This document shows, piece after piece, positions 17,134 through 19,890 of a DNA stretch of 64,000 nucleotides. The stretch lies in the NCBI RefSeq assembly GCF_000143415.4, contig NW_003314275.1:873955-937954 (forward strand). The letters are read 5' to 3'. The notes beneath the pieces are model-generated. The model made no database searches and was not told where the DNA came from. It worked only from the letters and a program-made list of their open reading frames with translations. Each line of letters starts with the position of its first letter. Within the stretch, counting starts at the first letter, position 1. Both the position numbers and the translations under genes were made by a program. This DNA is from Selaginella moellendorffii. Taxonomy: Eukaryota > Plantae > Lycopodiophyta.

Positions 17134-19890
17134 CTACCAGCCGGAGCCACCATCGTTGGCGACTCCATAGCCTTCCGGGAATCGCCCGTGAGCTCCACCA
17201 GGAGGAGACCGGCTTCGTCCGCGGCTCCGACGAGCATTGGGACTCCGGCTCCGGCTCCTGCTGTAGCTCCGCTTCCCGGAAGAGATCCTCTCTCCATAGC
17301 CCCTCCTGTAAACGTCCCCGTTCTCGAAGCCGATAGCGCCGTTGTTGGCAACAGGAAACCTTGCAAGTGGCGCAGTAGCAGCAGCCGCGCCACCACCCCA
17401 AGAGCTTGCTCGCCTGTTACCATAGAAGCTGTTGGCCGGGGCTCCTCCGCCTCCTCGGCCACCGCCGGACTCCCAGCGGTTGTGGCGAGGCTTTCCAAAA
17501 CCGCCTCGAAGTGCCATCTCTCTCAACTCCGGTGGGACTTTCTGGTTCGCACCCTCGAGGACTTTGATCAAGTCCCTAGCGTACTTCCCGTCTTGCTCGG
17601 CAAAAAAAGTGTGAGCCAGGCCAGTGGCACCAGCTCGGCCGGTCCGACCAATGCGGTGGACGTAGTCCTCCACACCGGTGGGAAAGTCGTAGTTAATGAC
17701 AACTCTGCAATACAAACAACTCGAAGGTCAGCAGAGGGAAAGAAAGAAAAAGACAAGTCTCGCTTTGTTTCGCTTACCTGATATCTTTGATATCTAGCCC
17801 TCTTGCTGCGACATCGGTAGCGACAAGAACAGGCGATTTTCCAGCTTTGAACTGCGAAAGGACCCAGTCTCGTTCGCCCTGTGATTTGTCACCATGAATG
17901 GCCACAGCACCAAAATCTCTGCGCAGTGAGCGAGCTAGTTGATCACACATTCGCTTTGTTGAGCAGAATATGATAATCTTGGACCCAGGCTCTTGAGTCC
18001 GAAGAATCAGCTCCAGCTTTCGCGCTTTGTCTTGAGGCGAGACAACTTCTACGCACTGCACCGATTGTTAGCGCAAATACCAAAACAAAACAAAAGACAA
18101 AAATGGAGACCTGAGTGATAGCCTTGTTTGCAGCTAGATCGTCTGTATTTCCAATGTTCACCTGGATGGGATTCATAAGCAAGTCGCCAGCAATCTTTCT
18201 CACTTCTTTCGGCCACGTCGCTGTGTACATAAGCGTTTGTCTCTGAACAGGCACCTCATTCACGATTTTGCGAATCTGGGGCTCGAATCCCATGTCGAGC
18301 ATGCGATCCGCTTCATCCAGGACCAGGTAGGAGACCTGCCTCAAACTGATCCTCCTCATTTCCAAAAAGTCGTTCAGCCTTCCTGGAGTAGCGATAACAA
18401 TGTCGCATCCCCGTTCGATATCGCGTAGCTGGGGGCCTTTGGAAGCACCACCATAAACGCACTGCAAACATAAAAGAAAGATCATAAACAAAACAAATAA
18501 CAAAAATTCTTACCGTGCTCGTAATCCTGGAGGACCTCCCGAACTTGACAGCCTCCTCGTGTATTTGAGTAGCTAATTCTCGCGTTGGGGCGAGAACGAG
18601 TACTGTTGGGCCCGATCGTGGGTTGTTCCTTCGTCGCTCTAAGTGCATAAATGCTGGCAGCAAGTACCCCAGCGTTTTTCCAGACCCCGTCTTTGCAATA
18701 GCTACAATGTCACGGTCATTCAGAGCTATAGGCCAGGATTGGGCTTGTATAGGTGTAGGTGCCGTAAACCCGGCAAGTTGAACCTGTTAAAAAACGAACA
18801 GTATAAATACGTTTCCAAAAGCTTCTAAAACTTGCACTACTCCCAAGCAGAAAAACTAAAGAACAAGAAAAGTAAGGCAACATCTTAACTGATGCCGCAT
18901 ATTGTCACAGAATCCAGTACTTAAGTTTGCACCGGCGTGAGAGGAATGCAGTGTCAGCCTGGTTGGTCCCTTCTTCCGAAGGGTCATCCTCCAAACCCGG
19001 CAAAAGAACATTGGTACACATGAAGAGCAGCACAGCGTACGACATATGCTCCATTCTGGAGCAAATATCGCATCTGCGAAGGATAAGGGACGTAGTAAGT
19101 TTTAGCCCTCTAAAAAGCAAAGTATGTATACACTAGATCCAGAAAAGAAGACAGCATGCATGCAAGGACCAAAACCAGCAGGACAAAATGCACATACCTC
19201 TCTTAAGACTTCATCTGGAAGACCTGCCGATTCGAAAGTTATGAACGGTGCTGGAACGTTGGTTCCCTGAAACAGAAAGGCCAAGGTGATGTTATGAGCT
19301 TGCAACACCAAAATACCAAGTATTAATGAAAGACATACCACGATGGTTATCTCGTGCTGTCTCCTGTAAGAATCGACGTCAAACGGTGATGCCGTCGTTT
19401 GAGTCCGAGGGCGCTTGTAGGCATCCCGACCATTGTAGTCAAAATTGTCAGCATTCCGCTTGTAGCCACCCAGCGCACCCGGCACCAAGGCAGCGTTTGA
19501 GCCTCCATTTACAACCTGACATGAAGAGAAAACAATGAAAAATCCGAGAGAAAGTTATCTACGAGCAAGTGTTACCTGTGACTGTCCTCCAAACATCGAA
19601 AGCGCTGCTAGTTTTGGCTGCTCGGCAACCTTACTCCCGTACAGAGAACCATTGCTTCCATTGACGTGACCATTCGCCATCGAGCTCTCTTGAAAAGTCG
19701 AACCATTCACGGAAAATCCTGGAGCACCGCTGGAAGAGACTGGCTTCACATACGTCGTCTCGTTGGACTGCGTGTTCCAGTAGTAGAGATATCCAGTCTC
19801 TTCGTCCACCAGGGCCTTCCATGGAGGAGGGAGAGTTGGGTCTTCTGGGGCATAGTGAACACCAGGCGTCGATGCCACCGGAGCCACCAT
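17134..19890 (-). CDS. RH14: WW-domain DEAD-box RNA helicase (RH14/DRH1-RH46-RH40 clade, Dbp2/p68 family). Exons 19890-19576, 19515-19339, 19266-19198, 18783-18514, 18461-18111, 18055-17778, 17704-17134
   Basis: WW domain ([20 protein letters not shown]), Q motif [39 protein letters not shown], and an RGG/RS-rich tail. All introns are GT-AG. Confidence 0.95.
18915..19080 (-). ncRNA. Candidate structured cis-regulatory RNA element in helicase intron 3
   Basis: Long hairpin at 19031-19078 and a GNRA-capped hairpin at 18968-18983 with flanking helices, inside a 414-nt intron. Confidence 0.6.

Follow-up and report, generated by a model that had tools for sequence, protein, structure and literature searches.

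The element reported here is a copy of the published "DEAD motif", a single hairpin of about 20 bp found in a long intron of the land-plant RNA helicase genes DRH1/RH14 and RH46, where it lies over an alternative 3′ splice site and has a bulge facing this site (PMC12218528, RNA Biol 2025). The motif was found in 115 land-plant species, 113 of them angiosperms, from a survey described as covering every tracheophyte and bryophyte of RefSeq 204; its structure drew support from R-scape (E 0.0044 on 335–339 sequences) and from covarying substitutions at the partner of the acceptor AG, and the alt3 isoform was seen to build up in NMD mutants (PMC12218528). In Arabidopsis, DRH1 shifts its own pre-mRNA to non-coding forms, for which helicase activity is needed, as tested with helicase-dead mutants; the acceptor is laid open by disruptive stem mutations, compensatory ones bring back normal splicing, and the specificity comes from the RGG tail of the protein (bioRxiv 10.64898/2026.01.23.701338, 2026). 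Both papers (PMC12218528; bioRxiv 10.64898/2026.01.23.701338) credit Burgess and Freeling with an earlier report of the element, then classed as a deep conserved non-coding sequence. The DEAD motif illustrates well how a cis-acting RNA can sense helicase activity, and it has already been dissected by mutation in Arabidopsis.

The stretch of Selaginella moellendorffii DNA analyzed here (64 kb, in the following referred to as the window) contains a DRH1/RH14-type helicase gene with one unusually long intron, intron 3, and the hairpin in this intron is the Selaginella copy of the DEAD motif. With a probability of about 0.88, this copy acts as a splicing switch which is opened by the helicase and which closes a negative feedback loop. 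The motif itself is already known and is not a new finding. Given the stated scope of the RefSeq 204 survey, the published set of 115 species very probably includes S. moellendorffii. What the window adds is transcript evidence for the hidden acceptor and for a poison exon in a lycophyte, a lineage outside the published RT-PCR tests. Further, smaller additions are a lineage-specific weakening of the stem (an A.C mismatch) and the lack of conservation elsewhere in the intron, a putative second structured domain included.

Host gene and its long intron

The coding region (17134–19890, minus strand) comprises seven coding exons (19890–19576, 19515–19339, 19266–19198, 18783–18514, 18461–18111, 18055–17778, and 17704–17134), the in-frame join of which encodes a protein of 676 aa. 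Its translation comprises an N-terminal WW domain, a DEAD-box core of the DDX5/RH14 type, and an RGG/RS-rich tail. Pfam assigned WW, DEAD, and Helicase_C domains to the protein, and both RGG and RG repeats were seen in its C-terminal tail. Protein comparison matched 676 of 676 residues with a DB10-like helicase of S. moellendorffii (P0173), and the closest relatives retrieved by protein search carry the names RH14, RH46, or DB10.

To relate the gene model to transcripts, public runs holding 62–75% of the helicase gene's sampled words were chosen, and the contigs of four of them (X1, X2, X6, and X7, each from a different study) were aligned to positions 17100–20100. The runs are spliced over the helicase gene and, therefore, represent RNA. 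All six coding introns (60, 72, 414, 52, 55, and 73 nt) were backed by spliced contigs from the four runs, which agrees with the earlier note's reading that five of them are short and only intron 3 is long. A further intron of 67 nt (19892–19958, minus strand), spliced in contigs of all four runs, resides in the 5′-UTR, with a single base between its end and the start codon; the 5′-UTR exon extends past 19959. Intron 3 itself (18784–19197, minus strand) has GU and AG at its ends, and an RNA contig joint skips exactly these 414 nt. It is located after the sequence ...LPDEVLRE, just upstream of the exon encoding the Q motif.

The contigs of X1 and X2 matched the window exactly, and the intronic alt3 contigs were likewise free of differences. 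Those of X6 and X7 deviated from it at nine exonic positions within 17334–19430 (e.g., T>C at 17334 and G>C at 18592), which probably reflects allelic or haplotype variation. At or upstream of the 5′ end of the helicase gene, two words resembling telomere repeats, CCCTAAAACCCTAAA and TTAGGGTTAGGG, are present in opposite orientations at 20229–20243 and 20145–20156 (minus strand); telo-box elements of plant promoters look similar. A stretch of 23 nt on the plus strand (20189–20211; GTGGGTTCGAGCCCCACCA) resembles the T-arm and acceptor end of a tRNA including CCA, but a tRNA gene at this position was rejected, as ARAGORN found none within 19900–20500. Reading the minus strand by eye suggested that a further spliced gene may lie immediately upstream of the helicase gene (20360–21450).

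The intron 3 hairpin and the acceptor in its stem

The stem-loop described in the earlier note was found where it had been placed (19031–19078, minus strand), and its identification rested on folding, on a covariance-model match (19082–19028), and on alignment. Its predicted energy was −25.4 kcal/mol, compared with −14.1 ± 2.8 kcal/mol for shuffled sequences (z −4.1), and none of 200 shuffles folded as well. In Selaginella, 19 of the 20 consensus pairs are formed, and the base following the acceptor AG is in an A.C mismatch. The three G-U pairs of the hairpin can form on the transcript strand only. Folding the whole of intron 3 gave a z-score of −2.0 on the transcript strand vs −1.0 on the opposite one.

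The base of the stem, CGCAG/CUGUG, contains the AG (19074–19075, minus strand) of an alternative 3′ splice site, as defined by RNA junctions, and the alternative exon starts at 19073. In the predicted fold this AG is paired, its probability of being unpaired not exceeding 0.03. A pyrimidine-rich tract with a candidate branch-point region (GCUAAAAC, CUUACUAC; 19076–19106, minus strand), recognized by reading the sequence, may serve this acceptor.

Use of the alternative acceptor was evident from the contigs. In all four runs, a contig extended from 19075 down to 18756 or 18782 and, beyond 19075, read into the last letters of exon 3; a reciprocal loose end at 19198, present in two of the runs, continued into the hairpin. 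When two ambiguous letters are allowed for, this corresponds to a junction 19198/19073, with the AG at 19075–19074 as the acceptor, in four runs from four studies. The resulting alt3 isoform, which is unspliced on into exon 4, was present in X1, X6, and X7. Run X2 contained, together with the junction 19198/19073, a second joint 18889/18784, which defines a cassette (poison) exon of 184 nt (18890–19073, minus strand) whose 5′ splice site, CA/GUUAAG at 18889, is joined to the normal acceptor (18784). The cassette exon was observed in X2 only; contig depths do not allow isoform ratios to be derived. As exon 3 ends in phase 0, translation of either form continues for 29 codons past the alternative junction and then meets a UGA as the 30th (18984–18986, minus strand). 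The earlier note had postulated that an alternative acceptor or a poison exon is toggled; both exist in transcripts, and each brings a premature stop. It had also pointed to an acceptor-like UUUUAG near 19111. Such a site is indeed present (UUUUUAG, 19110–19116, minus strand), but the acceptor in use is the CGCAG of the stem base, and no junction to UUUUUAG was seen in the contigs of the four runs, from which rare forms may be absent.

Conservation of the hairpin and of the rest of the intron

Orthologues, introns included, were retrieved by protein search with the last exon and then with a full-length hit, which yielded eight species (L001 to L008): Riccia, Calypogeia, Ceratodon, Sphagnum, Adiantum, Acorus, Cinnamomum, and Prunus. 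The comparison thus covered bryophytes, a fern, and angiosperms, with Selaginella as its one lycophyte. When searched with the peptides of exons 3 and 4 (tblastn), all eight had an intron at the identical codon position, between 529 and 923 nt long, which makes that of Selaginella, at 414 nt, the shortest of the nine compared. The published isoform sequences (cd, alt3, and IR) of Physcomitrella, Populus, Glycine, Arabidopsis, and Solanum place the intron likewise, and in these five sets, the letters right after the exon junction are nearly identical to the hairpin of the window. The motif intron directly precedes the exon beginning with ...AGF..PTPIQ.

The hairpin is carried by all eight orthologous introns. 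In the alignment of the nine sequences, 35 of 74 columns were invariant, among them the acceptor CAG and all three G-U pairs, and 96% of the cells of the 20-pair consensus stem were paired. One fold is common to all nine, with the AG paired in each, and the G of this AG pairs with a C in nine of nine species (pair 18–57). When only the other eight species went into a covariance model, this model matched the window at 19082–19028 on the minus strand over its full 55 positions (66.9 bits, E 5e-17). This was the only strong match within the 64 kb; the opposite strand of the hairpin scored 23.4 bits, in line with the claim that its G-U pairs make sense on the transcript strand only. The suspicion that the element might be a lycophyte instance of a motif known from land-plant DRH1/RH14 genes was thus borne out.

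Selaginella differs from the other species by the A directly following the AG, a position occupied by G in the remaining eight. Its stem energy equals that of Acorus (−25.4 kcal/mol), whereas the other seven range from −28.3 to −30.2 kcal/mol. Because of the mismatch, and because the stem is ∼4 kcal/mol weaker than most, the set-point of the Selaginella element may differ from that of most of the other species.

The comparison looked different for the remainder of the intron. A second element, consisting of the GNRA-loop hairpin CCCUUC-GGAA-GAAGGG (18983–18968) and its enclosing helices, had been proposed for the region 18926–19004 (minus strand), which lies inside the cassette exon. Its helices do occur in the sequence but carry little statistical weight: the small hairpin reached a z-score of −2.1 and the domain (81–86 nt) one of −1.6 to −2.0, with 7–13 of 200 shuffles as good, and they are not conserved in the eight orthologous introns. 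Outside the hairpin block (intron positions 119–172), no significant similarity to these introns was detected (blastn-short; all E > 0.4). A purine block shared by the Selaginella and angiosperm RH14 introns (GGAAGAAG) is a 7–9-mer and was taken as chance because its GAAGAAG word is absent or located elsewhere in the bryophytes, the fern, and Prunus. Given the lack of significant similarity beyond the hairpin block and the inconsistent GAAGAAG word, the GNRA-loop domain is without support as a conserved element.

A second candidate is an 8-bp hairpin (GCGGCAUC/GAUGUUGC; 18877–18898, minus strand) predicted to form around the cassette exon's 5′ splice site, the GU of which (18889–18888) would fall into loop and stem. 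Its energy was −10.3 kcal/mol (z −2.85), and 2 of 200 shuffles were as good. The published angiosperm RH14 introns likewise have a small hairpin about a CAUCAG word, though not necessarily a homologous one.

Both of these structures lie within, or at the end of, a cassette exon which is in actual use, and the whole intron folds better than expected on the transcript strand only (z −2.0). One might, thus, envisage a lycophyte regulatory unit made of several hairpins, with the GNRA-loop domain (19004–18926) and the 5′ splice-site hairpin (18898–18877) as additional structured parts. The z-scores of approximately −2 and of −2.85, however, are within reach of 1–6% of shuffles, nothing but the DEAD hairpin has significant similarity to the eight orthologous introns, the GAAGAAG word is not consistently placed in bryophytes, fern, and Prunus, and the published motif consists of one stem; such a unit is considered unlikely. 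Slightly more doubtful still is a lycophyte switch with more than a single stem in which helicase activity would control the poison exon at its two splice sites and the A.C mismatch would set a leakier threshold than in other land plants.

The near-invariance of the hairpin block raises another question, namely, whether structure is what is being conserved. From liverworts to angiosperms, the block varies less than a plain helix would require, and 15 of its 20 stem pairs never vary among the nine sequences. In this almost invariant sample, covariation values were those of shuffles, so that the structural support rests on thermodynamics, on the published mutants, and on the published R-scape result. 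The block could accordingly be a linear element, either one bound by a splicing factor or an unusually conserved alternative acceptor with an enhancer, with structure and helicase sensing having no role in Selaginella. This is improbable, a little more so than the readings with additional hairpins: in Arabidopsis, compensatory mutants restore wild-type splicing; the larger published alignment does show covarying substitutions at the partner of the AG (R-scape E 0.0044); and conservation of the G-U pairs is confined to one strand.

An imperfect but stable inverted repeat, ∼48 nt in length and located in an unusually long intron, could also suggest a miRNA or snoRNA precursor, or the remnant of a transposon's inverted repeats, with no role in splicing, but this reading was rejected as next to impossible, given that a scan of 15000–24000 on both strands matched no family of Rfam 15 at E ≤ 1, that the hairpin is present in a single copy in 64 kb, that land plants share it at one intron position, and that its 5′ arm serves as a splice acceptor.

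The proposed switch and known systems

The preferred reading, a DEAD motif operating as a helicase-opened switch, would work as follows. With the hairpin folded, the basal stem would bury the AG at 19075–19074, the whole 414-nt intron would be removed, and coding mRNA would result. Opening of the stem, which the model published for Arabidopsis assigns to the helicase encoded by the gene itself, would give access to the acceptor. Splicing to 19073 would then yield the alt3 isoform or the one with the 184-nt cassette exon, both of which would be expected to undergo NMD on account of the UGA after 29 codons. Decay of these stop-bearing transcripts would exert negative feedback on the helicase level. 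For Selaginella, opening by the helicase, specificity through the RGG tail, and NMD are presumed by analogy with the Arabidopsis papers, in which the response to the gene's own helicase and the targeting by NMD were demonstrated for DRH1 only.

Among the systems to which this arrangement can be compared, the THIC TPP riboswitch and the P5SM element in TFIIIA share the principle that a conserved RNA structure gates an alternative splice site, giving rise to unproductive transcripts and feedback. They sense a metabolite or the ribosomal protein L5, respectively, rather than helicase activity, and their folds are unrelated.

Closer with regard to the protein are yeast DBP2 and human p68 (DDX5), for which Barta and Iggo are said to have described intron-mediated autoregulation in 1995. 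As in Selaginella, a helicase of the DDX5 family would curb its own expression by means of an unusually large intron of its own gene. The autoregulatory intron of the yeast and human genes is located near motif VI, whereas that of Selaginella is upstream of the Q motif. To our knowledge, the DBP2/p68 intron has no sequence similarity to the plant motif, and we know of no description of a hairpin-buried acceptor in it. It is, thus, best regarded as an analogy to the Selaginella intron, apparently not as its homologue.

Against the DEAD motif of DRH1/RH14 and RH46, Selaginella differs in having A instead of G after the AG, at the expense of one pair, and in its shorter intron of 414 nt. The likeness extends to the family of the host gene, the position of the intron, and a near-identical hairpin sequence; to the stem base with its alternative 3′ splice site, the G of which is paired to C; to the premature stops in both the alt3 and the cassette-exon isoforms; and to the RGG-containing C-terminus of the helicase.
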